Of a DNA stretch of 64,000 bases, positions 20,885 to 64,000 are shown in pieces; the first letter of the stretch is position 1; every line of letters begins with the position of its first letter. The notes under the pieces were generated by a model. It saw only the letters and a program-made list of their open reading frames with translations. It did no database searches and was not told the DNA's origin. The DNA lies in contig NIVC01003331.1 of the NCBI GenBank assembly GCA_002269645.1, positions 5,269-69,268 of the forward strand, in the 5' to 3' direction. This DNA comes from Macrostomum lignano. Lineage: Eukaryota. Both the position numbers and the translations under genes were made by a program.

Positions 20885-20889
<5 letters not shown>

Positions 20890-27924: not shown

Positions 27925-27930
27925 GTGAGC

Positions 27931-30490: not shown

Positions 30491-30561
30491 CGTAGTGGAT
30501 CATGTTATACTAGTACTAGTTTATCGTACTAACACCTACCCCTCCCGTTCTTGTTTCCCAG

Positions 30562-32252: not shown

Positions 32253-32284
<32 letters not shown>

Positions 32285-35722: not shown

Positions 35723-35729
35723 CCACAAA

Positions 35730-35817
35730 CCTTTAGCGGGCCGAATTGCTATTTTGAAGTTTCAAAGAACCCGAGGGCCGGATAGAGAGGCTTCGCGGGC
35801 CGGAGTGCCGACCCCTG
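35730..35817 (-). mobile_element. Possible solo hAT/MITE terminus (CAGGGGTCGGCAC...GGCCCGCG)
   Basis: Resembles hAT-family CAGGGGTCGGCAA termini. No partner TIR was found. Confidence 0.3.
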
Positions 35818-36262
35818 CGCTAAACTATGTACATTTCCTAAGTAAAACCATTATACTGTATCTAGCTTTTAATTTGAACGAACGAAAGCATTTCCTAAGG
35901 TAAATTATATTTGAATGGATAAAGAAAAGCTTCATCAATATGCATATGCTTCGAAACAGCCTGTCAGCTGGCTTAATTCACGCCAATTCATGAGAATTCA
36001 AATAGCATGCCTCTTGTTGAAGACATCTCTTCTCTTCTCTTTTTCTTTTGATTAAAATTCAGAAGCCAGAAACACATAAGAGCTTTCAGTTTGATAATGG
36101 CTTGGGAATTGTCACAGCTGGCATCTGCAAATAAAAAATGCTTGTCAGTCACGCTGATTCCCAATTATCTTTAATAGCGTGAAAAACAGCAAAAAAATTA
36201 AAGAGAAAATTTGCATGATACGACATCTCAAAGCTATAGAACGGTTGTCAAGTTCGACGACA

Positions 36263-37321: not shown

Positions 37322-37395
37322 GCCCTCTTTATCATGTAAATTCGAATTCGAATTAGCACTCTATTTTCTTAATAAAGCTCATTGTCAAGCTGTCA

Positions 37396-37627
37396 AGCAT
37401 TGTTATAAAACCGCGCGTCGAGAGGCATTACTGCCCATCCCGCCGACTCCCCCTGAGCAGACATACGCACAGGCACACACTCACACAGGAATGTACAGAG
37501 GCCCGGACTTAATTTATCGTTAGGCATGTACACTTCACTGCGCCTTGGGGGTTGGTCCTCAAGACCATTAATTGCACGAGATTCCAATTGTGCCCCAAAT
37601 TAACGCGACTGCACTTGGAATCGAGCT
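37396..37627 (-). mobile_element. Dispersed SINE-like repeat, copy 1 of 4
   Basis: Shares GCTCGATTCCAAGTGCAGTCGC.TTAATTTGGG...GTACATGCCTAACGATAAA...TGTGTGAGTGTGTGCCTGTGCG with the copies at 42.6, 46.6 and 57.3 kb. Confidence 0.8.
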
Positions 37628-38132
37628 ATACGTGATGTACCTGTTTTGATGTTCGCTAGACGCTTATGCCTTGGATCAAAAAAATCATTTGTTTGTTATA
37701 ATTTAGCACTGCGCGTTCTTCGCGTATCACACACTGAGCCCTGTTTTGTCAAAATTTCCACCAAGAATCGCTGGAAACTTATGAGCATTGCTAATTTATT
37801 TTGTTATAAAAATAAAAAAAATAAATTTTTGATTTGCTACAAATTTGCTCTTCTTTTTCTTTTTTATTGAAAAGAGCAACATTAATTATTTTGTTAAATC
37901 CATAATCTTAAGCCGATATAAATACTCATAAACACAAAACTTAGTTATGTAAGTTAATATAATTTTCCGAAATTTAATTTACATAAAAGATAAATAAGCG
38001 TTACAGTTCTGAACAATATCGTCATGTTGCAATCAGCTGTAAAGTAGAAAAATATTAGAAACGATCATAGCATAACGAAACCGGCAATTCACAAGCAAAG
38101 ACTCAGAATTCGAATGCTGCAGTATAAAAGGT

Positions 38133-39770: not shown

Positions 39771-40160
39771 TTTTTATTTTTAATTCGTGGACACTTTGCA
39801 CAGTGCTGGGCAAGAGAAGCTAAGGAGGGGAGGTCGGCCGTTGTGCGCAGAAAAATGTGCAGCAAAATTGTGCCGAAGAATTCAATGCCACTATGTCTAT
39901 TATTCTTTTCTGCTTTCACTATGAAAGGTAGCGTCGCACTGTATTCGTATGGAGCTAATGAATGATGAGCACCAGGGGGCTGTGCTGTGCGCAGACCTTA
40001 CCAAGCCATGGCAACCCTGGCTAGAGAGCATCCAGAGTGAAGGGAAGAGAGGATTGGTAGGAATCGCGGGCAGGTGAAGGAAGAGAGTACGCTCTAGGCT
40101 TGGCAAGTAAGGCTTCACCTGCCCGCCCCCCCCCCCAGCAATGCATTGATCGAACGCGGC

Positions 40161-40174
40161 GTCTCCATGACAAC
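40161..40174. promoter_or_regulatory. RFX X-box GTCTCCATGACAAC; a second partial site GCCATGGCAAC at 40005-40015
   Basis: Matches the GTHNYY-AT-RRNAAC consensus and lies ~390 bp upstream of the 39770 ATG. Confidence 0.6.
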
Positions 40175-41094
40175 GCGAGTGAGTTTCTTGCTGGCTGCAT
40201 TTTAAAAAAAACGCTGCTGCTTCTTTTTCATCTTGGCTCTTAATTTGCTTCGTCTCTCTCCACACTCTCTGCCCAGCTCGCTCTATTTTCCTTCCCCGCA
40301 TGCGACCGTTTTATATGCAGGAATATCGCCTCACCTGCAGGTCCACCTGCAGCAGATGCTCACGTTAGGTAGAGCTGTACAGACTGCTTCTCTATCTGTG
40401 TCAATTCTTCCTTCTATTGAACGTTTCTGAAACATGCTGAGTTCTGCTGCCAGCTGCAAGACAGGGCGCCAATGCGCAATTGCTCCGCTACTTACAGTAG
40501 CAAGTTGCGATACAGAGAATTCAATCTAACATATTATCAATTTGATTTTAAGAAGCGAAAAGGAAAGGCACGATTTATAGTATCAGATGATAATATGTGC
40601 AAATATTGTAGTTTGTTTGAAATCGCTTTTTTCATTGTTGGTATCTTCAATTTGAGACTTAAAAAGGATAAGAAACACACATTTAGGCGTGACGTAGTGG
40701 GGTGTCGTAGACTAGTGGTCCAGCGCGGCGCTCTGGTGTGCCAGCGGCCGGAGATCGCAAGACAAATGTGACTTTGCTTTGCGATCTCTAGTCCCGAACA
40801 ACGCAAGGCATATCATAACAGTCGTGCCTTGCGTTTTCCTTGATTTGAGATCTCTGGGGGGTAAAAATGTACATGAGCGGTGTACAGACACGAGGCTACA
40901 ACTCTGCCAAAGAATTACTGGTTGCATGTGCAGGGACTCACACGGCCCACACAGCTCTAGATGAGTTGTCGGTGTAATTGCGCAATGTATACAATTCATT
41001 CTCACTGATGCTCTAGTATTTTAAAAGCTATTAAATTAAGAATTTAGAAGGCTGCAAAGCGTGACTGAGGTACTTGCAGTTTCAAGTGGAGACA

Positions 41095-41370
41095 GACGTG
41101 GCAAGTCTAAACCAAGTGTTCTTTAACGAGCTTGTATTGAACGAGTACGCCAAAATTCCCGGAGACTTGCCGGCCAAAGTGAGGGACAATTTGAAGCGCA
41201 AAATTCCAGAGAAAGTATAAAGGCTTTTCTTCCAAGACGGTCAATTGTTCTAAAAAGTGACAAACCGGAGCTGCTGCAAGAAAAGGCGCCCAGAACATCA
41301 GCGGCGTGTGCTTTTTACGGAGGATGAAGTCAGGGAAAAGATCAAAACACTGCACGTCGAGTCATGTTAA
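41095..41370 (+). pseudogene. Fragment resembling the region N-terminal to a Gypsy/GIN-type integrase
   Basis: KVRDNLKRKIPEKV*RLFFQDGQLF*K...RRVLFTEDEVREKIKTLH, with two stops. Recognition only. Confidence 0.35.
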
Positions 41371-41804
41371 ATGGGAATGAAGAGCACCACTGGCCTCTTT
41401 ACTGTGCGATTTTACAGCGAAAACTTACTTAAAGCCACCCACCGGGACATGGGGAATGGGGGTTTTAGGGTGGCGAGATTCTTCATGTGGGGATCGATTT
41501 TTAACCTAAACTTTGATAGAGGCATGGGGTCTATAGAAACATTAAAAAATTTCCTAACTCAGTAATTTTACATCCTTGAAGCACTTTCACTTAATCTTTT
41601 TGTTCCAAGACTAATCGTTTTAGTACATTATCGTTCTTTGACCCGGAAATCACAATCCGCATATCTCAAAACAAACCTTAGTTTTTCGGCAGGATGTTTC
41701 AACTTAGCTTGTGACTTCCGGGGAGACTGCAAGCACCCCTGAGAACGTAAAGCAGCTTGAGCTACCCGGACCGGATACTTTAAGACGCTTGAAACATCCG
41801 GGTG

Positions 41805-42545
41805 TCCAGGTGGAGATCAGAAAGCACTTGCAATGTCCAGGGGGAGATCAGAAAGCACTTGCAATGTCCAAGGGGAGGTCAGAAAGCACTTGCAATGTCC
41901 AGGGGGAGATCAGAAAGCACTTGCAATGTCCAGGGGGAGATCAGAAAGCACTTGCAATGTCCAAGGGGAGATCAGAAAGCACTTGCAATGTCCAGGGGGA
42001 GATCAGAAAGCACTTGCAATGTCCAGGGGGAGATCAGAAAGCACTTGCAATGTCCAAGGGGAGATCAGAAAGCACTTGCAACGTCCAGGGGGAGATCAGA
42101 AAGCACTTACAATGTCCAGAGGGAGATCAGAAAGCACTTGCAATGTCCAGGGGGAGATCAGAAAGCACTTGCAATGTCCAGGGGGAGATCAGAAAGCACT
42201 TGCAATGTCCAAGGGGAGATCAGAAAGCACTTGCAACGTCCAGGGGGAGATCAGAAAGCACTTGCAATGTCCAGAGGGAGATCAGAAAGCACTTGCAATG
42301 TCCAAGGGGAGATCAGAAAGCACTTGCAATGTCCAAGGGGAGATCAGAAAGCACTTGCAATGTCCAAGGGGAGATCAGAAAGCACTTGCAATGTCCAGAG
42401 GGAGATCAGAAAGCACTTGCAATGTCCAGAGGGAGATCAGAAAGCACTTGCAATGTCCAGGGGGAGATCAGAAAGCACTTGCAATGTCCAGGGGGGAGAT
42501 CAGAAAGCACTTGCAATGTCCAGGGGGGATCAGAAAGCACTTGTA
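41805..42545. repeat. 31-bp minisatellite GATCAGAAAGCACTTGCAATGTCCAGGGGGA, about 24 copies
   Basis: Period 31 verified (41815, 41846, 41877). Confidence 0.97.
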
Positions 42546-42594
42546 CTATCTGGGCGGATAACACAAGACACGGATATCCGAAAGTATAACATCG

Positions 42595-42870
42595 GGCTCG
42601 ATCCCAAGTGGCAGTCGCATTAATTTGGGCCTAAATTGGAATTTCGGCTTGGCTCTGCTCGTGCAAATTGACGCCATTGAGGGTCAACCCCCAAGGCACA
42701 GTAAATTGTACATGCCTAACGATAAACAAAGTCAGGGCCGCTGTAAACTCCTGTGTGAGTGTGTGCCTGTGCGTATGACTGCTCAAGGGCAGTCGGTGGA
42801 ATGGGCATGAGTAATGCCTTCCGCCGGTTGTGAGACAATGTCGCTTAAAGTGCGCCAGAGTGCACACAGC
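42595..42870 (+). mobile_element. Dispersed SINE-like repeat, copy 2
   Basis: B-box-like GGGCTCGATCCC head plus the shared body. Confidence 0.8.
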
Positions 42871-44147
42871 TCACTGCCTCTAACTAACTTAAGTAACTAA
42901 TGTTATGGCCTTTAAAGTTTTTTATTCCATTAGACAATGCAAGACGCCTTCCGCTTATAGGTTTGAATTAAGCAACAAATTTGAATCTAAATATACTACT
43001 AACCTAACGCTGTCATTTTGTTGAGCAGCAACTTATCGACTACTTTTTTACGAGCTTGCAACTTGGTTGTTTCCGGACCAGCGACATTTAAATTGGTCTC
43101 CTAATTGAGCTTTCTATTTAATGAAAAATTGAACGCATTGTGCAAATTGAAGAGTGATTTTAAAAATAGATCTTTTAAATGCTCTCTTGCTCCCTGCCGA
43201 TGCTGTTGTTGAACATTTCAATAGACATTTCCGATACTGAATTAACGAAGTAGTCGTCTATTTGTTATTTCTTTGCCATGGGAGCCAGCAATGTTTGAAG
43301 ACAAAGCCCGCAAAGCCAAAAAATTGACAAAGCCTTTCAAGACTCAATGTGAATGAATCGAAAAAAGTAAACTATAGATAGTAAAGATCTTTTCTACATG
43401 GATTCCATGAGGGCCTCAACTTTTTCATCGAGATATTCCCTGCCTAAGGGTTCATCCTTGCGTGGCATCCATAGCCGAATAGATAGCGGTACCGCTGCGG
43501 GGCGAAAGCTGCAAGACTGACAGATAAACATGTAATGCTGTGTATGACTGCACGCTTTTTTCCACAGCTGCAGGCCCGACCCGTGACAATAGCGACTGCT
43601 GCTGCTCCCAGCCGCTGGAGACAGCTGCTGCAGTTCGCGGACACAAAAGAAGCTTAGAATCTTACTGCTGGGGCGTGTGGGCGAGAGTCAGACCTGCAAG
43701 CCACCCGGGCACTTCAGCTGGTTTGTCCTTCCACTAAGCCAAGTACCTCCCCCTGCGTCTGCCTCTACGCATCTCTATTCACTCTTCCAGTCTCTTTTTT
43801 ACCATTCATTCGTTGTTGTCGTCCATAGTAACCAGCCATTCTCTTTCTGCAAAGCTGATTTGCTGAGTGTGGCCCGGCAGGGAAACTGGAAGGGGGACGC
43901 GGGGTGGAGACGGCAGGAATTATCCCCCAATTACTAATTATTGCTGAGTGGCTGGGGGATTTCGGCTCTGCGGCCAGCCAATTCGGATCAGAGCAGGGGG
44001 TGAGAGCTCTTAGGACTAGAAATCTATTACTGATAAGTTAAGCCGCATCCTTTGTCGCAGTATCCGTGCAGCCGGTTTAGTGGTTCCTTCCGGACACTTT
44101 CACTCACTCTATAAAGTCATTAGACCTCGCACAAAGACGCAGTGGTC

Positions 44148-44515
44148 ATGCCCGAATTGAAATCAGCCAAAGGCAACGCCAAATCAACTTCGTCGTTGAA
44201 CAGCAAGAAGCAGCCGGCGGCGGCTATGGTCACGCCGCCAAGATCCGTGAGTCCGAAGCCGCCGCTGCCGAAAACATCGTCTGTAGCTTCGGCTCCAGCG
44301 GCTACGCCTGCCGCTCAACCGCAAGAGCCGCAGCCGCCGCAGCCGCAGCCGCAGTCGCAAGCTCCTGGCACGCTCGAAGAGATCGAAGTACTATTCGTTA
44401 ATAGTTTGGAAAAGAAATACGAGTGCCCGGTGTGTAGTCAGGTGCTGCGCTATCCTATGCAGTTTCCTCAATGCGGACACCGTTGCTGCAGTGCTTGCTT
44501 GCCGGAATTGCTCAG
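44148..44515 (+). CDS. TRAF4: TRAF (TRAF4-like) exon 1: Pro-rich N-terminus + RING
   Basis: EKKYECPVCSQVLRYPMQFPQCGHRCCSACL; donor AG|GTGCG. The paralog assignment is tentative. Confidence 0.9.
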
Positions 44516-45206
44516 GTGCGAATTTACTCCGGAACGGCCTTGAAATTCAGCTTTAAGTTGGGAAGCAGCGACAAGGGCCGCTAAAAGTTACCTTTTAATA
44601 AGGATTTAGCCCTCAGTTTCTATGAAATGCTTTATTTAAAGGCCTACTTTCGCTCTGCAGTAGCAAAGCGACAACACTCATTTTTAGTATAGTGGACTAG
44701 CAATCTTCCCCCGTTGGGGGAGGCAACAGAGGAAGGAAAAAAAATTTTTAGTAGATTTCATGTAACCTTTGACCTTCTGCAGTCGCTATTGTTTAGTTTC
44801 TTGAATAAAATGACGTTTCATGTGACGTCCATTGTCCAGTTAAGTCCTGATAAAACGATATTACCTCTAGCTGCGCTTGGATTGGGTGGAGGTTATAGTG
44901 TTGGGGCATTCTTTCAACATTCCGTGACCATGCTCGATTTTTAAACTGTACGAGCGTACAAATCAGATCCTGATAGCAGCGTCGTTGCACTTGGGTCGCA
45001 CTTTTTAAAAAAATCTGTAACTTTTAACTGCATCAAATCTAACTGCATGCTGAATGCATCAGTTTCATCTGCATTGCAAAACGGAATCTGAGCTCCCTTT
45101 TCTCCCTGGATTATTTTGCTTGAAAAACTGGGAGCTGCTTTTTTATTTTGGCTGCTTCCTGCTTTACAAAATTTTAACTAATATGCACTACTTTAATAAC
45201 CGTCAG

Positions 45207-45360
45207 AGTGTCGCCCAGGTGTCCCCTGGACCAGACCAGCATCGACAAGGACAGAGTGCTGGAAGACCGTGCGTTTCAATCCGAGACAGAGGCGCTCGAG
45301 GTGAAATGTTCCTACTGCGCCAGGGGCTGCAAGTGGACCGGGCATCTGGTGGACCTGATG
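45207..45360 (+). CDS. TRAF4: TRAF exon 2
   Basis: Acceptor GTCAG|A completes Arg; RCPLDQ...DRAF...LEVKCSYCARGCKWTG; donor ATG|GTGAGG. Confidence 0.92.
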
Positions 45361-45383
45361 GTGAGGCGTTTGGAGTGGGTTAT

Positions 45384-45897
<514 letters not shown>

Positions 45898-46584
45898 TTG
45901 TTGTAATGCCGCTACGTGGAGGGGCCTAAGCTGCTAGGGAAAGTTATTCTGCTGTCCTTAAACAAGCGTCGAACTACGTTAGGCCATGTTTCCCTTCCAT
46001 CTCATCTGTCCCCCAAGATCTGGCCTGAAAGTTTCCACCTGCTATAATTAGTCTTGTCGACGTTCTCGTTTATGGCCTTTGTGGCTTTCACAAATGGCGG
46101 TTTCTTTTAAATTGCTGAAAAGTTGCTGGGGCAGCCTCTCTTTGCAAGAAAATCGATACAAGAGAAGGCAGGTAGGACAGAGGTGGAGAGGAGGAGACGA
46201 AAAAGCAGTTAAGAAGAAATTTTTAACAACCTTTGGTTGTTTGGTACTCTTAAAAGACTTTTTTGAGCAATTCTATGCGGCCTCACGATCGTCTCTCATC
46301 AGAGTGTTGAAGCCTCTCAAAGGGACAGGATTATTGATCTTTAAATAGAAACAGAGTCAGTTGGAGTTAAGGACCAAGAAGGGCATACTTTTAGAAAATT
46401 GAGAGAGAGTTTGTTTTAATAAAATTCTGCACTCCAAAAAGAAAGCTGATTTCTTTCAAGGTGATTTATATTATACTCAATCAATATCCAGTGAAGGCTA
46501 TGGGCCTCTCTAAAGTCATTGCATATTTTAACTTTAATATTTTAGTAGGCTGGCTACATTTAAACGTTTAATATTATAATGGGC

Positions 46585-46870
46585 CTGTGTGCCACCCTGA
46601 TGCACTTTAAGCGACATTGTCACACAACCGGCGAGGGGCATTACTGCCCATTCCGCCGACTCCCCTGAGCAGTCACACAAGCGCGCAGTCAAACGCACAG
46701 GCACACACTCACACAGACTCACAGCGTCCCTGACTTTATTTATCGTTAGGCATGTACACTTCACTGCGCCTTGGGGGTTGGCCCTCAAGGCCGTTAATTG
46801 CACGAGCAGAGCCAAGCCGAGATTCCAATTCAGCCCCAAATTAATGCGACTTCACTTGGAATCGAGCCTG
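46585..46870 (-). mobile_element. Dispersed SINE-like repeat, copy 3 (in TRAF intron 2)
   Basis: Reverse complement of the 42.6 kb copy. Confidence 0.8.
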
Positions 46871-47002
46871 GGCTGCAATTGAAGTACTTAAAAGTAAAGG
46901 ACATTTAAATCGACATGAACCTATCGACATCGACATAAACTAGATATATTTTTTCATAAAAAGTCATCGCTTAAGAATAATCATTAATCCCCACTTCAAC
47001 AG

Positions 47003-47323
47003 CCGCATTTGGAGACCTGCGACCGCGGCCTCACGGTGTGCCCTCTGAACTGCGGCATAGTGTTCGAGAAGCGCTTCCTTGACAAGCACCGACAGCAGGA
47101 CTGCGCCAAGCGTCAGGTGAAATGCCGCCTGTGCTCCGCTGAGATGCTCGCCCACGACGAGCCCGACCACGCCAGCGAGTGTCCAAAAGCGCCAGTTCAG
47201 TGTCCGAATGGCTGCTCGAATCCGAAGTTGGTCATCACTAGGGAGATGCTGACGGCCCATCTGTCCGCTTGTCCCAAACAGGAGACGTCTTGCCCTTTGG
47301 CTGTGCACGGCTGCGAGTTCAAG
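47003..47323 (+). CDS. TRAF4: TRAF exon 3: TRAF-type zinc fingers
   Basis: HLETC...CPLNCG...H...DCAKRQVKCRLC...HASECPKAPVQCPNGC...HLSACP...CPLAVHGCEFK; donor AAG|GTTAGT. Confidence 0.93.
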
Positions 47324-47326
47324 GTT

Positions 47327-47331
47327 AGTAG

Positions 47332-47365
<34 letters not shown>

Positions 47366-47366
47366 G

Positions 47367-47457
<91 letters not shown>

Positions 47458-47474
47458 GACTAGCTAACTAACTG

Positions 47475-47529
<55 letters not shown>

Positions 47530-47530
47530 G

Positions 47531-47570
<40 letters not shown>

Positions 47571-47571
47571 G

Positions 47572-47612
<41 letters not shown>

Positions 47613-47613
47613 C

Positions 47614-47657
<44 letters not shown>

Positions 47658-47909
47658 GCCTGACTAACTAGCTAACTAACTAACTGACTAACTAACTAAC
47701 TAACAAACTAACTAACTGACTAACTAACTAACTAACTAACTAACTGACTAACTAACTAACTAACTGACTGACTGACTAACTAACTGCCTGACTAACTAGC
47801 TAACTAACTAACTGACTAACTAACTAACTGACTGACTAAATAACTAACTAACTGACTGACTAACAAACTAACTGCCTGACTAACTAGCTAACTAACTAAC
47901 TAACTAACC

Positions 47910-47973
<64 letters not shown>

Positions 47974-47990
47974 GACTAGCTAACTAACTG

Positions 47991-48045
<55 letters not shown>

Positions 48046-48046
48046 G

Positions 48047-48094
<48 letters not shown>

Positions 48095-48095
48095 G

Positions 48096-48173
<78 letters not shown>

Positions 48174-48202
48174 GCCTGACTAACTAGCTAACTAACTAAC
48201 TG

Positions 48203-48241
<39 letters not shown>

Positions 48242-48417
48242 GACTAACTAACTAACTAACTAACTAACTGACTAACTAACTAACTAACTGACTGACTAAC
48301 TAACTAACTGCCTGACTAACTAGCTAACTAACTAACTGACTAACTAACTAACTGACTGACTAACTAACTAACTGCCTGACTAACTAGCTAACTAACTAAC
48401 TAACTAACTAACTAACC

Positions 48418-48495
<78 letters not shown>

Positions 48496-48538
48496 ATAAC
48501 TAACTAACTAACTAACTGACTAACTGACTAACTGACTG

Positions 48539-48590
<52 letters not shown>

Positions 48591-48606
48591 GCTAACTAAC
48601 TAACTG

Positions 48607-48648
<42 letters not shown>

Positions 48649-48668
48649 CAACTAACTAACTAACTAAG

Positions 48669-48700
<32 letters not shown>

Positions 48701-48701
48701 C

Positions 48702-48735
<34 letters not shown>

Positions 48736-48775
48736 CTAACTAACTAACTAACTAACTAACTAACTGACTAACTAA
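47327..48775. repeat. (CTAA)n microsatellite with CTGA/CTAG variants, filling TRAF intron 3
   Basis: Starts ~3 nt into the intron and ends ~12 nt before the acceptor at 48787. Confidence 0.97.
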
Positions 48776-48787
48776 AACAACACCCAG

Positions 48788-49121
48788 GGCAAGAAGCAGG
48801 ATGTCCAGTCGCACCTGCAAACTATGCAGTCGTATCACACTGAGCTACTTTGCACAGCCTTCAAGTCGGCTCGTGAGCGCCTGGAAACAAAAGAAAAACA
48901 AGCCGCTGACCTCGAGGAGAAAGTTATCGGCTTGGAGAAGCGCATCCGCTGCATGGAGTCCGTCTACGGGCCGCAGATGATCTGGCGAATCGAGAACTAC
49001 GCCGAAAAGCTGGCGGAGGCGAAGTCTGGAAAGAAGGTCACCATCTACAGCCCGCCATTTCTGAGTCATCGGCATGGATATAAGTTGGCTGCGTCAGCCT
49101 GCCTGTTTGGCGATGGGGCTG
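48788..49121 (+). CDS. TRAF4: TRAF exon 4: coiled coil + start of MATH domain
   Basis: In frame from CCCAG|GGC; MIWRIENY...YSPPFLSHRHGYKL...GDGAG; donor G|GTGAGG. Confidence 0.93.
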
Positions 49122-49284
49122 GTGAGGATGCTGAGCACGGGAATTTGTTATCTTTATTAGCAGATTAGTCCTCACTTATCAATACAAATACATGTAGCAG
49201 TGTCTAATCACATATTGTTCATAGAATTTGTAATCTTAATCCTACTGAACTCTAATCCGATGTCAATCTCATCTCATCTCAGTC

Positions 49285-49640
49285 TAATCCAATCTCAATC
49301 TGATCCAATCACAATCTGATCTAATCTCAATGTGATCTAATCTCAATCTGATCCAATCTAAATCTGATCCAATCCCAATCTGATCTAATCTTAATCTGAT
49401 CTAATCCCAATCTGATCCAATGTTAATCTGATCTAATCTCAATCTGATCCAATGTCAATCTGATCCAATCTCAATCTGATCCAATCTAAATCTGATCCAA
49501 TCTAAATCTGATCTAATCTCAATCTGATCTAATCTATATCTGATCTAATCTCAATCTGATCCAATGTTAATCTGATCTAATCTATATCTGATCTAATCTC
49601 AATCTGATCTAATCTTAATCTGATCCTATCTCAATCATCT
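49285..49640. repeat. 16-bp degenerate repeat (AATCTCAATCTGATCY) in TRAF intron 4
   Basis: About 22 units. Confidence 0.85.
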
Positions 49641-51283
49641 AATCCCATCTCAGTATGATCCAATCTCAATATAATCCCATTACAATGTAATCTCAACCTA
49701 ATTTTTCCCAATGAAAAACCATTATTTGTTTCATTAGCTTCTATACTTAGCTCGTAAAAATTGAACATGTATAAAAAATTTGTATATTAAAGAGTTTTTT
49801 TTATTTAGTTCGTGACAAAAAGTTTTAGTTGAATGATGAAAAAAAATTGACAGGCATTAGGATTACACACGATTTTTAACAAATTGTCATGCCCCAATAC
49901 GTGATGTGGGCTGATATTAACCTTGGATTGGTTTTCTTGCAATTAAAAATTTGCTGAATAATTTGTCTGTAGCTAGCTCTGCTTTACCAGTGCTACAGGC
50001 CAATTATATTCTAGGATAAATTGTATGAGTTGGGTCACACGCTTACGTGCAAATCCTGAAATTTGTATGCTAGGCAAGAAATTTTAGTCTTCTTTTTCAT
50101 TACGTCTAACAATGAAAGTATAATAACAATCATTTCACTTTTGAAAAAATTAGCCTAGACTTAACTTTTTTCAAGATTAAAGTATCTTTTGAAACTGTAT
50201 ATATGCAACTTTGTTATATTACGCATAGCTTCCAAATTACGTTTTGAAAAGTAGAAAAATACTTGCTAGCCGAGAAAAAACATTTTAATTCGCTAGGATT
50301 TGGTAAATTCAGAAAGATTAATTCTACCTATACTACTTTTTTTAGATAGATATGTACTTTTAATTATAGTATTTAATTAAGTTGGTCAGAACTTGCGAAA
50401 GCTTTCATAGGGCCCCCAACCCCCGTTTCAAATTAAATCCACGATAGCTAATTATAAGAGGACGCGTTTAAAACAAGTTTTAGCAACCAAAAGCTTAAAA
50501 TTTTACCCAAAATAGTTTTGAAAGGGAATAGCTAGCTAATATAAATAATATTGAACTTTGAAATTTTTGACAACTTTCCAACTTGTGACTTAAAGGAACA
50601 TTTACATAATTGGAGCCACAATTCTTGTTGGCTTGAAATGGCATTGCATACTTATACTTGAATAGTTAAGTAGCATATGGGCGTAGAGTAAGTAGATCGT
50701 GGCGTATAATTTTTAAAATCTGGTGACCTGCATGTTTAACGCACGTAAGTAAAAACACTTTACGACTGTCTTTGTACTTTGTATAACCATTGGCATAATA
50801 TACTATATAATGTAAGTATAAGTATAGTATAGACTAATATATATGTCCTTATTCTCGATCTCTTTATTCTCTTTTTAATCAATATGGATTTACGAGCTAA
50901 ATGGAAAAATCGATTAAGGGTTAGTGCTATATTAAAAGCATGTGGATCCACAAGTATTTGTGTTTCTGATGAAGAACTTAAGGCCACTCAAAACATTAGT
51001 TTTTAGACTGTTGTTATCTATTAATAGTTCCCGAGTACAACCAAGTAAAATTGTTTTACTGAAGTGCGCTAAAATGTTCAGTCCAAAAATTAGAAAGCCA
51101 GTTTGAGTTACTCCAATGCATTCAATGAATACTGTATTTATTTGAAGCGAATATTAGCTATAATTATTTATTTTTGTCATGGTGTGTACTTTGTCTTCAA
51201 CACGTAATTTTGAAGAAAACAAGTTTGCAGACTTCTTTAAATTACTAAAACAAAGCCAATAATTCACCGTTAATTCCGCGCAG

Positions 51284-51612
51284 CCCGCGGAAAGTACATG
51301 TCGGTGTTCATCTGCATCTGTAAAAGCGACAACGACTCGCTGCTTCAGTGGCCATTCAGCCATCGAATCAACTTCGAATTACTCGACCAGCGAGATCAAA
51401 CCGAAGCCAGGCGCAACATTTCCTACTCGTTCAAACCGAATCTGTGCTCCGAGAATCGGCCATTCCTTGACAGGCCGATTGGCGAACGAAATCCCAGCTT
51501 CGGATGCGTTCGCTTCGCCGACTTGGACTGCATCGCCGCCAAGCAGTTTGTACGAGACGACTCAATCTTCATCAAAGTGACGGTCGATTGCGAGAATATC
51601 AAACCGTTTTGA
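51284..51612 (+). CDS. TRAF4: TRAF terminal exon: rest of MATH domain
   Basis: G|CC RGKYMSVFICI...LLQWPFSHRINFELLDQ...FVRDDSIFIKVTVD. Spliced CDS is 1506 nt (501 aa + stop). Confidence 0.93.
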
Positions 51613-54220: not shown

Positions 54221-55330
54221 CTAATCCCTCTTCCGATGTGTTTAAATGAACTGTTAATCCTTCTTCCGGTGTGTTTAAATGAACTGCTAATCCTTCTTCC
54301 GGTGTGTTTAAATGAACTGCTAATCCTTCTTCCGGTGTGTTTAAATGAACTACTAATCCTTCTTCCGGTGTGTTTAAATGAACTGCTAATCCTTCTTCCG
54401 GTGTGTTTAAATGAACTTTTAATCCTTCTTCCGGTGTGTTTAAATAAACTGTTAATCCTTCTTCCGGTGTGTTTAAATGAACTACTAATCGTTCTTCCGG
54501 TGTGTTTAAATGAACTGCTAATCCTTCTTCCGGTGTGTTTAAATGAAATGCTAATCGTTTTCCGGTGTGTTTAAATGAACTGCTAATCCTTCTTCCGGTG
54601 TGTTTAAATGAACTGCTAATCCCTCTTCCGGTGCGTTTAAATAAACTGTTAATCCTTCTTCCGGTGTGTTTAAATGAAATGCTAATCGTTTTCCGGTGTG
54701 TTTAAATGAATTGCTAATCCTTCTTCCGGTGTGTTTAAATGAACTGCTAATCCTTCTTCCGGTGTGTTTAAATAAACTGTTAATCCTTCTTCCGGTGTGT
54801 TTAAATGAACTGTTAATCCTTCTTCCGGTGTGTTTAAATAAACTGTTAATCCCTCTTCCGGTGCGTTTAAATAAACTGTTAATCCTTCTTCCGGTGTGTT
54901 TAAATGAAATGCTAATCGTTTTCCGGTGTGTTTAAATGAATTGCTAATCCTTCTTCCGGTGTGTTTAAATGAACTGCTAATCCTTCTTCCGGTGTGTTTA
55001 AATAAACTGTTAATCCTTCTTCCGGTGTGTTTAAATGAACTGTTAATCCTTCTTCCGGTGTGTTTAAATAAACTGTTAATCCTTCTTCCGGTGTGTTTAA
55101 ATAAACTGTTAATTCTTCTTCCGGTGTGTTTAAATAAACTGTTAATCCTTCTTCCGGTGTGTTTAAATAAACTGTTAATTCTTCTTCCGGTGTGTTTAAA
55201 TAAACTGTTAATCCTTCTTCCGGTGTGTTTAAATGAAATGCTAATCGTTTTCCGGTGTGTTTAAATGAACTGCTAATCCTTCTTCCGGTGTGTTTAAATG
55301 AACTGCTAATCCCTCTTCCGGTGCGTTTCA
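54221..55330. repeat. 33-bp minisatellite CTAATCCTTCTTCCGGTGTGTTTAAATGAACTG, about 34 copies
   Basis: Translates as an 11-aa period; a recurrent 32-bp variant breaks the frames. Confidence 0.97.
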
Positions 55331-55429
55331 ATAGGCTGCTATCAAAGTACGCGTACTGTAAGTAAATTTCAAAGCAGGTTACGCAATTCTTGGTCAGCAA
55401 AACGTTCTTCAACTATTCAACGTACATCG

Positions 55430-56050
55430 CTACACATAGTCTCGTCTACAAGGCGCTTCAGCTCCCATTCGCTGTCCAGCTGACCCACTAGATCCGCTAT
55501 TGATCAGAGCAGCAAACCGAGACGACGCAGTAGCTGTTTGCAGAGCTCCGTTGTCGCCATCAACAAACTCGTCGCATTCTTCGTCGTCGTCTAGCTCGAC
55601 TACCGTGGGTACTAACAGCACTCGAGTTTCATCCACGGTTCGAGGCGTTACAGGTAGGGAGCTCGCGTTGCTGTGGTTACTAATCACAGTCGATGAGGTC
55701 ATCGGTTGAAGCCTGAGGCTGCCGCTGTCGCCCTGCTGCTGAAACATTGTCGGTGAGGACAACAGTGCAGCCTGACGCTGATATCGACAGTGCGTTGAAT
55801 AGTGGCTGACGGATGTGGTAGCGGCGTCACCGATTCCGCTGCTACATGTACATCCGGGTTCATCGTAGTCGCTCCAGGACGACAGTTCGGAGGCAAAGTA
55901 AAACTCAGCGCCGCAGCAGGTGAACCGACTTGTGTCCCGGAGGCAGCAGTAGAGAGCCGCTGCCACCAGTACGCCCGCGCTGATAGCCGAGGTGACGAGT
56001 GCCAAACAGACTGGCCAAGTTGCGGACGCCAAGGTTGCGGTTGGAGACAT
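55430..56050 (-). CDS. Putative single-pass membrane protein (206 aa) with Cys-rich juxtamembrane segment; may be a terminal exon
   Basis: WPVCLALVTSAISAGVLVAAALYCCLR is TM-like. Ser-rich and acidic tail. GC-rich island in AT-rich flanks. Confidence 0.55.
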   Translation of the reverse strand: MSPTATLASATWPVCLALVTSAISAGVLVAAALYCCLRDTSRFTCCGAEFYFASELSSWSDYDEPGCTCSSGIGDAATTSVSHYSTHCRYQRQAALLSSPTMFQQQGDSGSLRLQPMTSSTVISNHSNASSLPVTPRTVDETRVLLVPTVVELDDDEECDEFVDGDNGALQTATASSRFAALINSGSSGSAGQRMGAEAPCRRDYV

Positions 56051-57530: not shown

Positions 57531-58295
57531 CAGTCAGGATAAGTAGAATTACTAAGGCAGGAAGATCTTACTTGTCACCCATTCCATGGTCAGTTGCGGC
57601 TTTACAAAATTCGCTGCTAATGAGAGACTGAGAAAGAGAACTCCAGGCACGAAGGATATAAAAGCTTCCTTATGACGAGGAACTGAGAAGGGTTAAGCGC
57701 ACGGAAATATGAGGTTAGGCAGGCTGGTTTGAATCCGGGCAGACGCCTTTATAGAAGGAAGTGACTGAAGTCTCTCAGCTTCAGACCGTCCAACCTCTTA
57801 TTTCTTTTCTACCTACCTTCTTTTTTCGTTTAACTCAATTACCTGCCCGACCCGTTAACTAAGGAAGTTAATGCGACCGCTTCGAAGGACCTTCCTTAGC
57901 TTTGAGCAACCTCGTCTCCCTTTCTATAATCTAGTGTCTCATTTTAGAGACAAGCCTGACTGACTTTGTGACACATTTCGCGGGCTCGAAATGGCTTAAT
58001 CACGACAAACTGAGTGCATTTTTGGGGTCAAATTAGTCCATTTGGCATGCAACTTTACCTTTTTTTCAAGTTACACAGCCTAACTTAATTATAATTGAGA
58101 GCTTAATTACCCTAAATAAGGCACGCAAAGTCAGTTGAGCGTCAAATGATAAATGTAATTTCGTCAGCTAACTGGTTTTATTTTTGAGTAGCGAGACTCG
58201 CTTCAGTTCAACCACCACAAAAAAATGTAATCAGTTTTCTTGACCAGAGTGCTTTGAGTGCTTTGAATAAAGTTTTCAGTTTCAGAGCGCAAATG

Positions 58296-58402
58296 CTACT
58301 TGCAGCGACCGCAAGTTTTCGCGCATAGACGGTGCAGCGTAGAGCACATTCCCGAGTGCTTGATTGCTTGACAATCGTGCGCCTTGATTTGATCGTTGCA
58401 AT
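58296..58402 (-). CDS. Basic Cys-rich multidomain gene, terminal exon: ShKT domain 3
   Basis: G|AT gives DCNDQIKAHDCQAIKHSGMCSTLHRLCAKTCGRCK*; acceptor TTTTTAG. Confidence 0.85.
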
Positions 58403-58487
58403 CTAAAAAGAGTTAGAAATTGTAGATCACTATAGTGAATTTGTTCATGCTTGTAAAAAGTAATTTGACGTCAAGGACGGTTCTTAC

Positions 58488-59702
58488 CAGAGGCGGCACT
58501 GACGCATTTCTCGCTTCGGGTGATCTTCTTAGCCACGCAGCGGCGCCGACCGGGGTAGGTGACATAATACCGAGTGCAAACAACGCGACGGCCGCACTTG
58601 CACCGAGACCGGCTAACGCTACGCTTGGGACACTTCGGCGAGCACGCGAATGTGTTCTTATGGTGGCGCACAATGCAGCGATGCTTACGACTGTTGCGCT
58701 CCGTGAATGTACTCGTCACCACGCGGTGCCAGCCGTGTCCCGGCTTGCGAACGCAATGGCCAACTTTTCGAACTATATCGAGTCCGCCGCAGCCGCGACA
58801 GCTCACCAGGCGATGTTTCTTTTTGATTCGACAGGGTCGACCGTGATGACCCCGACGACTGTGTCTAGTAACCACAATCCAGGTCAGCTTCCGTTTGCCG
58901 TGCTTGGTGCAGCGTCCAACAATCAGTCTGGAACCGATTGGGCAGCGAATGCAGCGTTTGTGACTCACTCCCTTATAAACTCGCCACAGCTTCAGTCGCC
59001 TGTCGTAGTACAGTCCACCTCGAACGATCTTACGCCAGCCAGATTTGGAGCAAGCACTAATGCGACGGCGCATTAGCCGATGACCATGACCTGCGCGTCC
59101 TGCCCGAGTGCGATGTCGGGCGCACTTGTGACAGCTGTGCGGACAAAGTTTTCTCACGCGGGAATCCTTGGCGCACTTGCCCTTACGAGCGGCTTGTTGG
59201 CACCAGCGCTTCTTGTCCTCGCAATCGTGGCAAGGAATTAAAATTCGGCGAAGTTTGTGGACACAGCGGCGGCGGCTGCGTCGGAAGTAAACAGCGATGA
59301 GAGCGCGTCGATAACACAGCGGACGTCGATCCTTGCCAAAGAATCGACGACAAACGCAGGCCCAAGACTTCTGAATGCGTCGATGCGGGCAGCCTTTTGG
59401 CTTTCGTTGACAAGCTTTTTCGAACAGCAGGCAGCCCGGGGTGGGCTTGAGTTCCGGAAGGTCGCGGTCGAGGCTGTGGTGGTTGATGCGGAGCAGGCGA
59501 CAGTGGCCGCTGCTGCGTTTATAGTCAAAGGCTCGGCAGTGAGGATTAGCCAAGCAGGAACGGCTGCAGGCCTCAAACGTGGTCAGCTTTGCAAGGGTAA
59601 GTTTATGGTTGCTACTCGTATCATTTTGACTGGCAAGCAGTGTACGATTTTGAGCCAGCAGACAGTGCTCTCCTACGTGGACGATTGTCGATTTGCTGCA
59701 GC
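58488..59702 (-). CDS. Exon: PAN/Apple domain, ShKT domain 2, basic Cys repeats
   Basis: TFEACSRSCLANPHCRAFDYKRSSGHCRL; CEDKKRWCQQAARKGKCAKDSRVRKLCPHSCHKC; acceptor AAACAG|GC, donor G|GTAAGA. Confidence 0.85.
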
Positions 59703-59784
59703 CTGTTTGATGGTAAATTAAATAGAGTCATAACTTAGTTATAAAAATGGAAAATCGAAGACAGTTCCACTATCCTAAGCTTAC

Positions 59785-60214
59785 ATTTTCCACATGTTGC
59801 AGCGCACAGCCGATCAGCCAAGTGGGGTGTCGACGGCAAATCTTAATTTTACGAGATGCGGCCCACTTCTTGCACACCTTGCTAGGAAGCTTGTCAGTGC
59901 AGGCGGCTTTGCAGGCTATCAAACGTCGGTAAAGTTTTGCTTTGCAGCGACATTTCTTCGGCGTGAAGACTTTAACGATGACAGTTCGTTTGCCTGAGTG
60001 ACATTTTCGTCCCATGCGGATCACTGGTCGACGGCAGCGGACTCGGTGGCGGCGAGTTTTTCGTACGATTTTGCATGTCGCAGATCCATTGCGAGAATGC
60101 GCCAGACGGTGATGATAAAGCGTAACCGAAAGTTGGCGGTTGGCATGGCAACGTGTCACTCGACGAACGCGTTTTGTACATGCACAGAGGCGGACGTGGG
60201 AGCGGCGGATCCGT
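59785..60214 (-). CDS. Exon: basic Cys repeats + ShKT domain 1 (one frameshift near 59818)
   Basis: CTDKLPSKVCKKWAASRKIKICRRHPT/LADRLCAATCGKC; donor T|GTAAGC. Confidence 0.75.
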
Positions 60215-60292
60215 CTGCAAAAAGACGTAAAGATAAACAGAAAGATAAAAGACAAGATAAACAAATCAAGATCAAAAAACGCTTCAACTTGC

Positions 60293-60847
60293 CTGCACTT
60301 GCAGCCAGCCCTGCGCTGCCACGTGACAGTTTCAATAGCGAATTTCCGACCGTCCTTCGCTGCAGCAGCGGCCGCCTTTGCCGCTTTGCCGCGACCGCAG
60401 CGACCCTTAACTCGAACGCGACGATGGCTGCAGGTGACTCGCTCTCGGCGACGTGTGCGACTGCGCAGTTTACAGCTGTTGCCGCGCGGATGCAGCCAAC
60501 TCTCGATTGTAACTATCACTCCACGTCGCGACAGACAGCGCTGAACTTTGCGTCTCTTCGACGAGCATCGGCAAAGGCGCAAACCACTTTTACGTGTTCG
60601 TCGAATGCAACGACAGCCACGTCGATGCCAGGTCTGCGTGACTACGCGTCGATAAAAGCCGTTTTTGTGGCGTCGGCAGTGGCCGGTAGCTTACGACGAT
60701 CGTGCGACATCGGATGGGTGCTCCGTCTTGCGCGAGACAGGGCGACAAGCGCCGTGAACCAGGGGTAGTGCGTTTTAACTCGAACTATAGCGTGTCGGCG
60801 CTTGTTGCAGAAACTGTGCTTACGACTTTTTCGCTTGCAGCTTGGAC
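60293..60847 (-). CDS. Exon: basic Cys repeats (about 3 frameshifts)
   Basis: Acceptor CAACAG|GT in frame with the previous exon; ends at a GC donor AG|GCAAGT. Confidence 0.7.
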
Positions 60848-61268
60848 CTGTTGAAAATGTTCCGAAAATGTTTTAATAGAGCGACTTTTGTAATGCCATA
60901 ATAGCGCTCTAGTAGGCCAGAAGGTCCCTAGCTTAGTAGGCTAGTAAATTCACTGCTAGAGAGGCAAGTTAAGCAGAGTTTTTCGCGGTTAGTGCGCAAC
61001 CTAATAGGCTACGTCGTATAGTGTCACCCCTCAAAATAGCCACAGTAAGAAAAGACAAAAAATGAAGTTGAGCTTCACTTTACCTAACTCTGATATGATA
61101 GATGGCCCTGAGCTGTGGTGAAAATTCTGGACGGAAGTTATGGGCACCTAGCTGTACACAGCCTTTGGATGCGCCGCGCCTGCTTTTTGCATACGTGGCT
61201 GGTTTTCAACGAGCAAGACGCATTTTTGTATTCTAAGCACGCATGCAAATACTCTTACGAATACTTAC

Positions 61269-62018
61269 AGCAGACTTGAGTTAAAGTCTTGACTCTTTTC
61301 CTGCAGCGACATTTATGAACGCTGTATGTGACTACACTGTTTCGGCGACGGCAGCTATGTCGATGGCACCGGCCTCGAACCCGGACAACTCTTTTCTTGT
61401 GTCGACAAACGACTCGACGCTTTGAACAATGTCTCCGCTTTTTGCAACCGCGACGATGCAGTTTGTACTCAATACGGCAGGTAACGCGGTACCAATGACG
61501 CGTCGATTGCGTCGACATTTTTGCTGACGTTTAGTCGATGGACAACGCAGCGAACAGCGCGTAGGTGGCGCCGTTTTGTGTGGCATCGACAAGATTTCTT
61601 AGTGACGTAGCGATGTACCAAAACGTCGCGACGCCAGCCTTTAGCATCGCAAGAGCCGCGACGTCGCAGTTTGACTGGACGGCAGCGAGCGTGTAGCGAG
61701 GCTGAGGTGTCGATTTTATGAACTCGCCTATGACAGACGCCTCGACGCCCGTCGAACTTGTATCGGACAATGATTCGAAGTCGGCGACCGTTTCTGCACA
61801 CCAGGCGATTCGAATTTTGACCTCTACAGCAGCAGGTGCGAGATTTTGTCCGGCGGCGTCGGACGCACTTTCCGCTGCGCTTGTCGCGATGCCACGTGAC
61901 TTCGGTAAGCAGACGACGGCACGTGTCGCGCTTGCACTTGCCAATATGACGTTTAGGCCGTCGTCGACAATGCTTGCGACAGGCGTGCTCAAAGATTCGC
62001 GAAGCGATGAACTTGTAT
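61269..62018 (-). CDS. Exon: basic Cys repeats (2 frameshifts)
   Basis: AA|A YKFIASRIFEHACRKHCRRR...; donor T|GTAAGT. Confidence 0.75.
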
Positions 62019-62284
62019 CTGAAAAATCAATGGTGCTTACTATTGGCTACTTAACTATACTTACTACTGACTGCGCGGATCGTAAATAATTAATCGTTCG
62101 TTACTACTACGAGCACTGGAACTTGGTCCAGGAACTTTACCTGACCTTAACCAGCCTCTGAATGCTTTTTGTCTTATTAAGAACAATACTAAGTACCAAG
62201 ATGTTTGTGCTTGTACTTTTGAAATTTATATGCGTTTATACTACTTATATGTCCGGATAGTCAGGAGTTATTGCCTAGACTTAC

Positions 62285-63321
62285 TTTTGTGTCTTCTTCA
62301 TCCTCAGATAATGCACCCGTCTTGGCCTGCTAGCCAACCATTTAACATAGCGACCCGATTTAGGCAGCGAACCGAATCCGATGACGAACAATCGAGCCAT
62401 GTGTTTGATCTTATCCGCGAGTAAAATCGAGCGCCTGCTCTTTGTATGTCTTCCTCTGGTCACTACGAGCACGATTCGCTTGACTTTATTCGAATATTGA
62501 CGCCTGCTGCGAACCAGGTGAGCCTTAATAGCTTTCAGAGCGCCGAAAAGATTTGTCTTACTGTTGGTGAAATCGTTGAACAATGCAGAAGCATCATTCT
62601 CGCTGGACTCGATATGATGCTTGCGCACAGTTGAGCTGTATGTGAACAACACCGTGCGAACCTTCGCTGAGCCGGATTCGAATTGGCGCAGGACTACTTC
62701 AAGAAAATCGGAGACGTGCGATCGATAGTTTGGACTGCCTTCCTTCACCGAAGAATGAAGATCCACAGCGACAACCAGCTCGACTATCTTGTTACCGACA
62801 ACCGCATCGGCGGTGATAGGAGCGTTTCACTCGAACGCATCGACAGCCGCTTAGTCCAAAAGTGCTGGACGTAGGCCTGTCGACCGTTACGGCAGCGTCC
62901 GCGAACAACGTGGCGACGCTTTTTGGGACATTGTACTGGTCGGAAGGCATTGGAAACGATAGCGTGGCATCGACCATCGCGCAACTGGTAGCGCACAGTT
63001 CGATGGCGTATGGAACCGCGGACGCATTTGCGAATTTTCTTTGGCCCAGGACAGCAGCACTTTCGGCCAGTTCGATGCACTTTGTTTTTTGCGACGCATC
63101 GGCAACCTTGAACACGGTATTGCTTAGTGGCTATTGCAATGGCACACTTTTTGCTACGGTGACAGATTGTCCGACGTCGAGAACGCGGACAGCGTACACG
63201 GTGTCGTTTGACGACCACACGACGGATGCATCGACAATTAGAAAGGTGCCAGCAAATTCTTGAACTGACGAGTACTCTACCAGCGGAGCTGCAGCGACGC
63301 TTTTTGATGCATGGTCGGCAC
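62285..63321 (-). CDS. Exon: basic Cys repeats + von Willebrand factor A domain with degenerate MIDAS (2 frameshifts)
   Basis: VELVVAVDLHSSV...VRTVLFTYSS...TNLFGALKAI...RIVLVVTRG...LFVIGFG; donor AA|GTAAGT. Confidence 0.8.
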
Positions 63322-63407
63322 CTGGGGTGAGTAAATAGTAGATTAGAAACAAAAATTAATAATATTTTAATGGAAGCCCAGACCTCGAAATAAAGGTAGC
63401 AGCTAAC

Positions 63408-63955
63408 CTTGATCTGCAGGGCACTCGCTTAATTTGTTTCTTACAATTGCAACCAATTCGGACGTGTTTTACGTAGATCTTCAAGTGTACATCCTTGCGC
63501 TTCGGGTGGGCAACTCGTCGCGAATAGCGCCAGGTTTTTATGACCGCACTTCACCCGATGCTGCGTTCGCTTGATCGCTTTCACGCAACGGCCCTTGTTG
63601 ATTCGATAGTGAACTCGGATGTGTTCAATCAATCCGCGTCGTCGATGACAGTGCTTTTCGAGCTTGATCGCCAGCAGCGACACACGACAGATTGACGTTT
63701 GATGATGCGCACACAACGGCAGCGCTTCTGGCGCCAGTGAACAGTGCGCTTAACGCGGTAGAAGCCGTACTTTGTAGGCACGGCGCATCTGCTTTGACTG
63801 AATAGCACTGGCGGACAAACGGTGGGCGCGAGTGCGGACCCGGATCTGGCCGTAGCATCCGCCGTGGGTCAGACGCCAATGCTTTAACATAAGCTGGGTG
63901 CGACACTTGCCATTGACACAGATGCATCTCTTGCGTTTCAATGGACGCTTGCAGC
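63408..63955 (-). CDS. Exon: basic Cys repeats (3 frameshifts); the gene continues beyond the window
   Basis: Acceptor CGACAG|G, donor AAG|GTTAGC. R/K/H/C-rich pieces alternate between frames. Confidence 0.7.
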
Positions 63956-64000
63956 CTGTCGGGTGGGTATGATTGGTACTTTGACACAGTAGAGCCAAAT

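Follow-up and report, generated by a model that had tools for sequence, protein, structure and literature searches.

The 3' portion of a gene for a cationic, cysteine-rich mosaic protein, interrupted by frame breaks at the end of a Macrostomum lignano contig

The window analysed here comprises 64,000 nucleotides of contig NIVC01003331.1 from the Macrostomum lignano assembly Mlig_3_7 (GCA_002269645.1). Its last 5.7 kb (window 58296-64000, minus strand; NIVC01003331.1:63,564-69,268) contain the 3' portion of a real, unannotated M. lignano gene. The predicted product is an extracellular-type mosaic protein in which ~24 four-cysteine modules are combined with single VWA and PAN domains and with three ShKT-like units. 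From the letters alone, a giant polycationic protein had been read at this locus (hereafter the original prediction). That observation is real, but it was over-read: the locus is a fragment at a contig end with a broken reading frame and, as assembled, cannot encode the protein described. Taken as a whole, the best explanation is a real gene fragment encoding a mosaic of Macrostomum modules, with frame breaks due to assembly errors and a role in a cohesive secretion. Its probability is estimated at about 0.5.

Gene model

Three-frame reading and the location of splice junctions yielded a minus-strand gene of seven exons with a total length of 4,687 nt, corresponding to ~1,560 codons. The exons and the 3' end are as follows.

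63408..64000, minus strand: exon 1, incomplete at the contig end; cysteine modules in three different frames; donor AG/GTTAGC
62285..63321, minus strand: exon 2; ~4 modules followed by the VWA domain; two frameshifts
61269..62018, minus strand: exon 3; module array; one or two frameshifts
60293..60847, minus strand: exon 4; module array including the best-kept super-repeat (60400-60681); 1-3 frameshifts
59785..60214, minus strand: exon 5; modules followed by ShKT-like unit 1
58488..59702, minus strand: exon 6; single open frame of 405 codons with PAN, 2 modules, ShKT-like unit 2 and ~5 modules
58296..58402, minus strand: exon 7; ShKT-like unit 3 (58299-58400) and stop codon
58296-58298, minus strand: stop codon TAG, read from the sequence
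58177..58182, minus strand: AATAAA, candidate polyadenylation signal, 113 nt past the stop codon, proposed from sequence only

The six introns are short (78-421 nt) and AT-rich, with a GC content of 0.30-0.43 compared to 0.51-0.58 in the exons. Five of them have GT-AG ends, and intron 4 (60215-60292) is of the GC-AG type (AG/GCAAGT...TTTTGCAG). The splice phases (2, 2, 1, 2, 1, 1) agree on both sides of all six introns. Window base 64000 corresponds to contig base 69,268, which is the last base of NIVC01003331.1, and the gene is truncated at this position. Because the contig stops there, the 5' end of the gene is absent, as had been noticed originally. The seven exons and the ~1,500 codons of the original prediction are also found, although not in one frame.

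Broken reading frame

Within exons 1-5 the frame that is rich in K, R, C and H switches repeatedly by ±1 nt. A Viterbi path based on composition, in which stops and frameshifts were penalised, located the switches, and they were checked by eye; the alternative frames are rich in A, S, T and L and are easily told apart. Each switch is forced, because stop codons are present in the frame that is left. The frame breaks lie at the following positions.

~63770, ~63667 and ~63538, minus strand: exon 1 frameshifts
~62848 and ~62795, minus strand: exon 2 frameshifts
~61533 and ~61500, minus strand: exon 3 frameshifts (one or two)
60757-60684, minus strand: exon 4 frameshifts (1-3 events)
~59824, minus strand: exon 5 frameshift, -1 at a CCCC run

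The minimum number of frameshifts is eight, and eleven (five +1 and six -1) fit the module pattern best. All are located at 59806-63770, at most 4.2 kb from the contig end, whereas exons 6 and 7 (1.3 kb) are free of them. Exons 1-5 thus lack the uninterrupted frame expected of an intact coding gene, and the original prediction overlooked these 8-11 breaks. In ShKT-like unit 1 the addition of one C to the CCCC run restores '...CRRHPHLADRLCAATCGKC', and only the corrected frame agrees with the phase-1 splice into exon 6. After correction, no in-frame stop occurs in 1,554 codons, 83 of which are CGA.

Tiny introns were considered as a cause of the switches. The 53-nt in-phase GT..AG candidate (60694-60642) was rejected, as it would cost a well-conserved module its start.

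Composition and conventional domains

The conceptual, frame-corrected product has 1,565 residues and consists of 19.2% R, 10.4% K, 6.3% H and 8.6% C with 3.2% D+E, in agreement with the initial description of a protein saturated with R, K and H and poor in acidic residues. A pI of 11.6 and a net charge of about +418 were computed. Five units of known domain type were located.

62305..62787, minus strand: VWA domain, Pfam PF00092, E 6.5e-10, 39.9 bits (cut-off 23.8), profile positions 2-164 of 174
59410..59700, minus strand: PAN/Apple domain (PAN_1), Pfam PF00024, E 9e-10, 38.7 bits (cut-off 21.4)
59786..59901, minus strand: ShKT-like unit 1, CTDKLPSKVCKKWAASRKIKICRRHP/HLADRLCAATCGKC, assigned by the six-cysteine pattern alone, after a 1-nt correction in the C run
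59122..59223, minus strand: ShKT-like unit 2, CEDKKRWCQQAARKGKCAKDSRVRKLCPHSCHKC, Pfam ShK, 18.3 bits (cut-off 20.9), full profile 1-37
58299..58400, minus strand: ShKT-like unit 3, Pfam ShK (PF01549), 20.0 bits (cut-off 20.9), full-length

Domains of the VWA, PAN and ShKT kinds are typical of secreted or surface proteins. All three are very divergent here, and the best E-value against PDB sequences is 0.015. The VWA domain weakly matches MIC2 and integrin I-domains in the PDB; its metal ion-dependent adhesion site is degenerate and reads V-D-L-H-S-S, not D-x-S-x-S. None of the three ShKT-like units reaches the gathering threshold of 20.9 bits, and unit 1 has no Pfam match. The C-x3-C-x2-C ending of the six-cysteine ShKT pattern is present in all three, in unit 1 only once the frame is corrected. 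Of the domains initially named, VWA and PAN therefore score above their cut-offs, whereas two ShKT-like units fall just below the cut-off and the third is recognized by pattern only.

Cysteine modules

Anchoring on the cysteines delineates ~24 modules of ~44 amino acids with four cysteines each in the pattern C-x9-10-C-x~20-C(-x-C)-x10-13-C. Eighteen of these can be aligned as x-C-x(2-6)-G-x-[beta strand]-[YW]-x(3-8)-C-[RK]-C-x(9-12)-C. The modules are arranged head to tail, and R, K or H occupies nearly every non-structural position. They are paired into a super-repeat of ~90 amino acids and eight cysteines, C-x20-C-x-C-x11-C-x-C-x9-C-x20-C-x13-C, with a conserved tail V-R-V-x-G-R. Seven copies, some of which cross frameshifts, have a mean column identity of 38%. 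The disulfide repeat of some 40-50 residues that had been noted is thus confirmed, and is described better as a four-cysteine module paired into super-repeats.

Pairwise protein similarity among the modules is weak, and no DNA-level repeats longer than 25 nt were found within the gene. Together these observations indicate that the module array is old; the missing DNA repeats rule out recent tandem amplification.

At E ≤ 10, Pfam searches with modules and super-repeats returned only noise and no family, so the repeat does not belong to a known Pfam family at this threshold. The C-x20-C-x-C-x11-C spacing presumably resembles that of fibronectin type I or VWC modules. This likeness is unsupported by Pfam, as neither fn1 nor VWC matched any module or super-repeat at the same threshold. 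A profile search of PDB sequences with the module gave no matches.

Relatives in Macrostomum lignano

Word-indexed searches of 5.8 billion proteins revealed none resembling exons 6-7 or the frame-corrected exons 1-5. The architecture, which had not been recognized originally, is accordingly absent from the databases searched, and its module lacks a Pfam family and a PDB sequence match. A profile search of the cysteine repeat, as had been proposed at the outset, was carried out with 18 modules against 1.84 billion representative proteins (hmmsearch). A single cluster was matched, with an E-value of 5.6e-9 and 11 matching stretches. This cluster (90%) consists of the uncharacterised M. lignano proteins PAA48661.1 (BOX15_Mlig000884g5), PAA67207.1, A0A1I8JML5, A0A1I8JKC7, A0A1I8I7P7 and A0A1I8JLU0. 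The modules of the window and those of the PAA48661.1 type align over the whole module (hhalign probability 92%, E 6e-7), and a joint alignment is possible. Because only this cluster matches the profile, the module family is confined to M. lignano in these databases. Judged by these sequence comparisons, the module represents an undescribed, Macrostomum-restricted cysteine module family.

The gene for PAA48661.1, which lies in the same assembly (NIVC01004089.1), has one or two modules per exon and no other known domain. An intron of this gene (L005 7221-11027, NIVC01004089.1) holds an open reading frame (ORF) of 1,269 codons with the retroviral-type protease motif LLDTGAQVSL, probably a retroelement insertion. 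No literature on locus tags of the PAA48661.1 type was found.

Predicted structure

The structure predictions suggested at the outset gave a mixed result. For a 94-residue super-repeat, AlphaFold2 produced an all-beta model with a predicted local distance difference test score (pLDDT) of 52.6, which is too low to be used. A single module of 46 residues, modelled with the joint alignment, is predicted to form three antiparallel strands (pLDDT 69.4). In a Foldseek search of the PDB with the single-module model the best hit had an E-value of 3.6, and none was significant. Pleiotrophin (2n6f) was found at rank four (E 5.2, template modelling score 0.40, likewise not significant).

Assembly error or pseudogene

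The Mlig_3_7 assembly (accession NIVC01000000) was built from PacBio continuous long reads with Canu 1.4 and was polished by Pilon only, with Illumina and RNA-seq reads (PMC5730564). A later study names GCA_002269645.1, calls the assembly error-prone and reports that ~85% of the M. lignano genome is present in three copies (PMC10733133). That the window belongs to this assembly is confirmed by NIVC01003331.1:33401-55038, which is identical to window 28133-49770. Two contigs of GCA_002269645.1 contain an exact coding match to a 545-residue ORF of the window (38136-39770 on the minus strand).

A paralogous contig, NIVC01002757.1 (92557-114194), is 96-99% identical to window 26600-42900, i.e. over ~16 kb, and both contigs encode identical 545-residue proteins. 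The indels that separate the two copies avoid coding ORFs. Colinearity breaks off at ~42.9 kb, at a 31-nt minisatellite (41803-42543), before the gene is reached. A second gene copy for checking the frameshifts was not found on NIVC01002757.1, which is colinear only at ~26.6-42.9 kb; from there to the locus no genes are called.

Two explanations of the broken frame have to be weighed. Uncorrected indels in the PacBio/Canu consensus are slightly favoured, and if the breaks are such consensus errors, the real gene is probably intact. The strongest alternative, realistic though not the preferred one, is a young pseudogene: one of usually three paralogous copies from the recent genome duplication, decaying by real indels and giving rise to no full-length protein. 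Decay of this kind would account for 8-11 frame breaks across 3.4 kb of exons, for the GC donor of intron 4 and for the finding that annotated proteins match neither half of the gene. The genome is largely triplicated (PMC10733133), and the duplicated contigs differ by 16 gap openings compared to 36 mismatches in 7 kb.

The state of the coding sequence is at odds with decay. None of the 1,554 corrected codons is a nonsense codon, splice sites and phases are all intact, and the cysteine pattern is kept across every shifted segment. CpG observed/expected ratios of 1.2-1.6 at the gene give no sign of CpG decay. For a decaying copy with a substitution:indel ratio of 10, a probability of 0.01 was obtained that no stop codon occurs; with a ratio of 3 it rises to 0.25. 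The position of the breaks also points to the assembly. They are concentrated in the terminal 4.2 kb of the Canu contig, with none in exons 6 and 7; for 11 evenly spread events, the chance of avoiding these exons is ~0.03, as estimated from exon lengths. Several are located in short homopolymers (T3, A5, C4). No frame breaks occur in the other ORFs of 1.1-1.7 kb in the window, which likewise favours assembly error. The missing annotation is weak evidence for a pseudogene, because annotation is sparse on this contig: the intact TRAF-like gene is also uncalled in the contig listing up to window 49770.

Several points weigh against an intact gene with the proposed function. The frame is broken in the only copy read, the N-terminus lies beyond the contig end, and intron 4 has a GC donor. 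Neither NCBI nor UniProt contains a protein from this gene, as would be expected for a non-functional or unexpressed locus. Since ~85% of the genome is present in three copies (PMC10733133), the loss of one copy would be tolerable. The substitution:indel ratio between the duplicated contigs is only 2.3-5.7, which raises the probability of finding no stops to 0.07-0.35 and thereby weakens the zero-stop argument. As to function, the proposal is built on composition and kinds of domain, the super-repeat model is of low confidence, and the Foldseek search of the single-module model yielded no significant match.

The locus illustrates how a gene of 1,500 codons can escape annotation in Mlig_3_7, whether through indel errors at a contig end or because one paralogue of a triplicated genome decays. 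The interest of the locus hinges on the gene being intact and expressed.

That the K/R/C-rich frames merely reflect CpG-rich DNA with few stop codons, in which many frames are open, is hardly credible: several frames and both strands do hold long ORFs here, but VWA and PAN exceed their Pfam cut-offs, six phase-consistent introns with a GC content of 0.30-0.43 alternate with exons of 0.51-0.58, and the regular cysteine spacing is common to an independent M. lignano protein family.

Possible function

If the gene is intact, its protein is probably secreted and would be kept rigid by disulfides; a disulfide framework this dense points to an oxidising compartment. With ~24 small beta modules and a charge of roughly +400, such a protein could bind polyanions in a multivalent manner. 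Candidate partners are sulphated or sialylated glycans, mucus, and microbial surfaces or envelopes, and the VWA, PAN and ShKT units may add contacts to proteins and carbohydrates. The product could thus cross-link a secretion and, in a gland secretion, serve in cohesion or as part of the matrix. Based on sequence features, this role in polyanion binding or secretion cohesion is proposed tentatively.

It is improbable that the protein is instead a toxin or antimicrobial precursor, from which cleavage at dibasic sites would free small cationic disulfide peptides together with ShK-type channel blockers. The product is cationic and cysteine-rich, has three ShKT-like units and contains 142 dibasic and 16 R-x-[KR]-R sites. 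The dibasic sites, however, are located within the modules and do not flank them, and the modules follow one another without gaps in a uniform eight-cysteine super-repeat. Nor does the tail of the super-repeat, V-R-V-x-G-R, match the classical R-x-K/R-R site. Release of peptides at dibasic sites had been part of the original prediction and is not upheld: 142 sites are what is expected from 30% K+R, and they lie inside disulfide modules. Furthermore, peptide precursors do not typically contain large VWA and PAN domains, which are characteristic of matrix or adhesion proteins, the K-rich linkers of the related M. lignano proteins are devoid of a processing motif, and no toxin family was matched in Pfam, in PDB sequences or by Foldseek.

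Among flatworms, M. lignano is the principal model in research on temporary adhesion, regeneration and reproduction. If intact, the gene would extend the secreted proteins of this species by a cysteine-module family not yet described and by an extremely polycationic design.

Other features of the window

The remaining features lie at lower window positions; the minisatellite closest to the gene is ~3 kb downstream of it.

1-10398: satellite of 10.4 kb, 23-nt unit TTTACATGACGCTTCTATGATTG, ~459 copies, 92% match, GC 0.32, strong AT skew
14001-24000: CpG-depleted block, observed/expected 0.03-0.4 compared to 0.7-1.5 over most of the window
25029-31020: OTUD7-like deubiquitinase gene with OTU domain (26830-27966) and A20 zinc finger (30520-31020)
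27928-30489: minisatellite of 2.5 kb between exons of the OTUD7-like gene, 24-nt unit, ~107 copies, open in several frames
44124-51609: TRAF-like gene; RING, TRAF zinc-finger and MATH exons seemingly intact
54221-55332: minisatellite, 33-nt unit, 34 copies, 93% match, open in several frames on both strands

The CpG-depleted block holds short ORFs, and these may derive from a mobile element; an old insertion or a local difference in methylation would then be suggested. The CpG observed/expected ratio is 0.0 in the minisatellite block 28001-30000. The best homologues of the OTUD7-like gene are 47-51% identical (annelid, rotifer, arthropod and mollusc). Introns of the TRAF-like gene contain the microsatellites (CTAT)111 and (CTAA)361. 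A single-exon protein that had been postulated at window 55433-56050 is not on record.

Comparison with known systems

As an extracellular mosaic with lineage-specific cysteine repeats, the product is a familiar kind of protein and not a categorically new system. Its closest known relatives, the proteins of the PAA48661.1 cluster, are basic and contain tandem 44-residue four-cysteine modules with the strictly regular spacing C-x10-C-x20-C-x10-C. Their consensus is CP-x8-G-x-C-x2-G-[YF]-R-...-G-R-C-x10-C, and the 'CP' start, the G-[YF]-R strand and the G-R-C motif are shared with the modules of the window. In the PAA48661.1 proteins the modules are without C-x-C doublets and are spaced by K-rich linkers in near-identical 225-residue repeats. 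These proteins are Lys-rich with 11% D+E, whereas the window product is rich in R and H, and VWA, PAN or ShKT were not seen in the fragments of the cluster. A link between the cluster and the glue protein Mlig-ap2 was rejected, as cluster peptides are absent from the supplements examined and the Mlig-ap2 repeat has a different sequence.

The original prediction had pointed to the K/R-rich cohesion proteins of flatworm glue. Mlig-ap1 is the cohesive protein of the temporary glue; two-thirds of it are low-complexity Gly/Arg/Lys (GRK) sequence around a core of C-lectin, vWD, C8, TIL and EGF domains, and its cationic regions bind negatively charged sugars (PMC6410801, PMC8621496). Like the window product, it is a very large extracellular mosaic from the same species with extremely cationic regions. 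In contrast, the basic regions of Mlig-ap1 have no cysteine framework and its core is not composed of VWA, PAN and ShKT. Mlig-ap2 has Thr-rich repeats of 221 and 255 residues with vWD, TIL and TSP1 domains, and its sequence in the supplement is unrelated to the window gene. No domains of Mlig-ap1 or Mlig-ap2 were found in the product by Pfam. Judged by sequence, the window gene is neither Mlig-ap1 nor Mlig-ap2, as neither has the module or the VWA/PAN/ShKT set. The glue analogy thus holds for phylum and charge and fails for relationship.

Another parallel is offered by the C-domain of midkine and pleiotrophin (PDB entries 1mkc and 2n6f), which binds sulphated glycans (heparin) through basic clusters. 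Its cysteine spacing is nearly equal to that of the module (C-x9-C-x21-C-x9-C, checked in the 1mkc sequence). The domain is small and basic and has a TSR-like fold of three beta strands, the strand number also predicted for the module. Homology was rejected at the sequence level: hhalign assigns a probability of 0.1-0.2%, and only the cysteine spacing agrees. The likeness is best regarded as a functional analogy. Midkine, moreover, is a two-domain growth factor, whereas the window product is an array of 24 modules.

The most far-reaching proposal combines these comparisons and is speculative, unlikely to hold in every part. It supposes that the frame breaks are assembly errors and that an intact, expressed gene encodes a giant secreted protein with a charge of ~+400 or more, whose undescribed, Macrostomum-specific disulfide modules would be rigid, multivalent binders of sulphated glycans, convergent with midkine and pleiotrophin. 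Such a protein would form a second, structurally different cationic cohesive class beside the GRK regions of Mlig-ap1. If the gene is intact, a folded, disulfide-locked cationic array would differ markedly in behaviour from the disordered K/R-rich regions of the glue protein and could be of interest for work on biomimetic adhesives or glycan binders.

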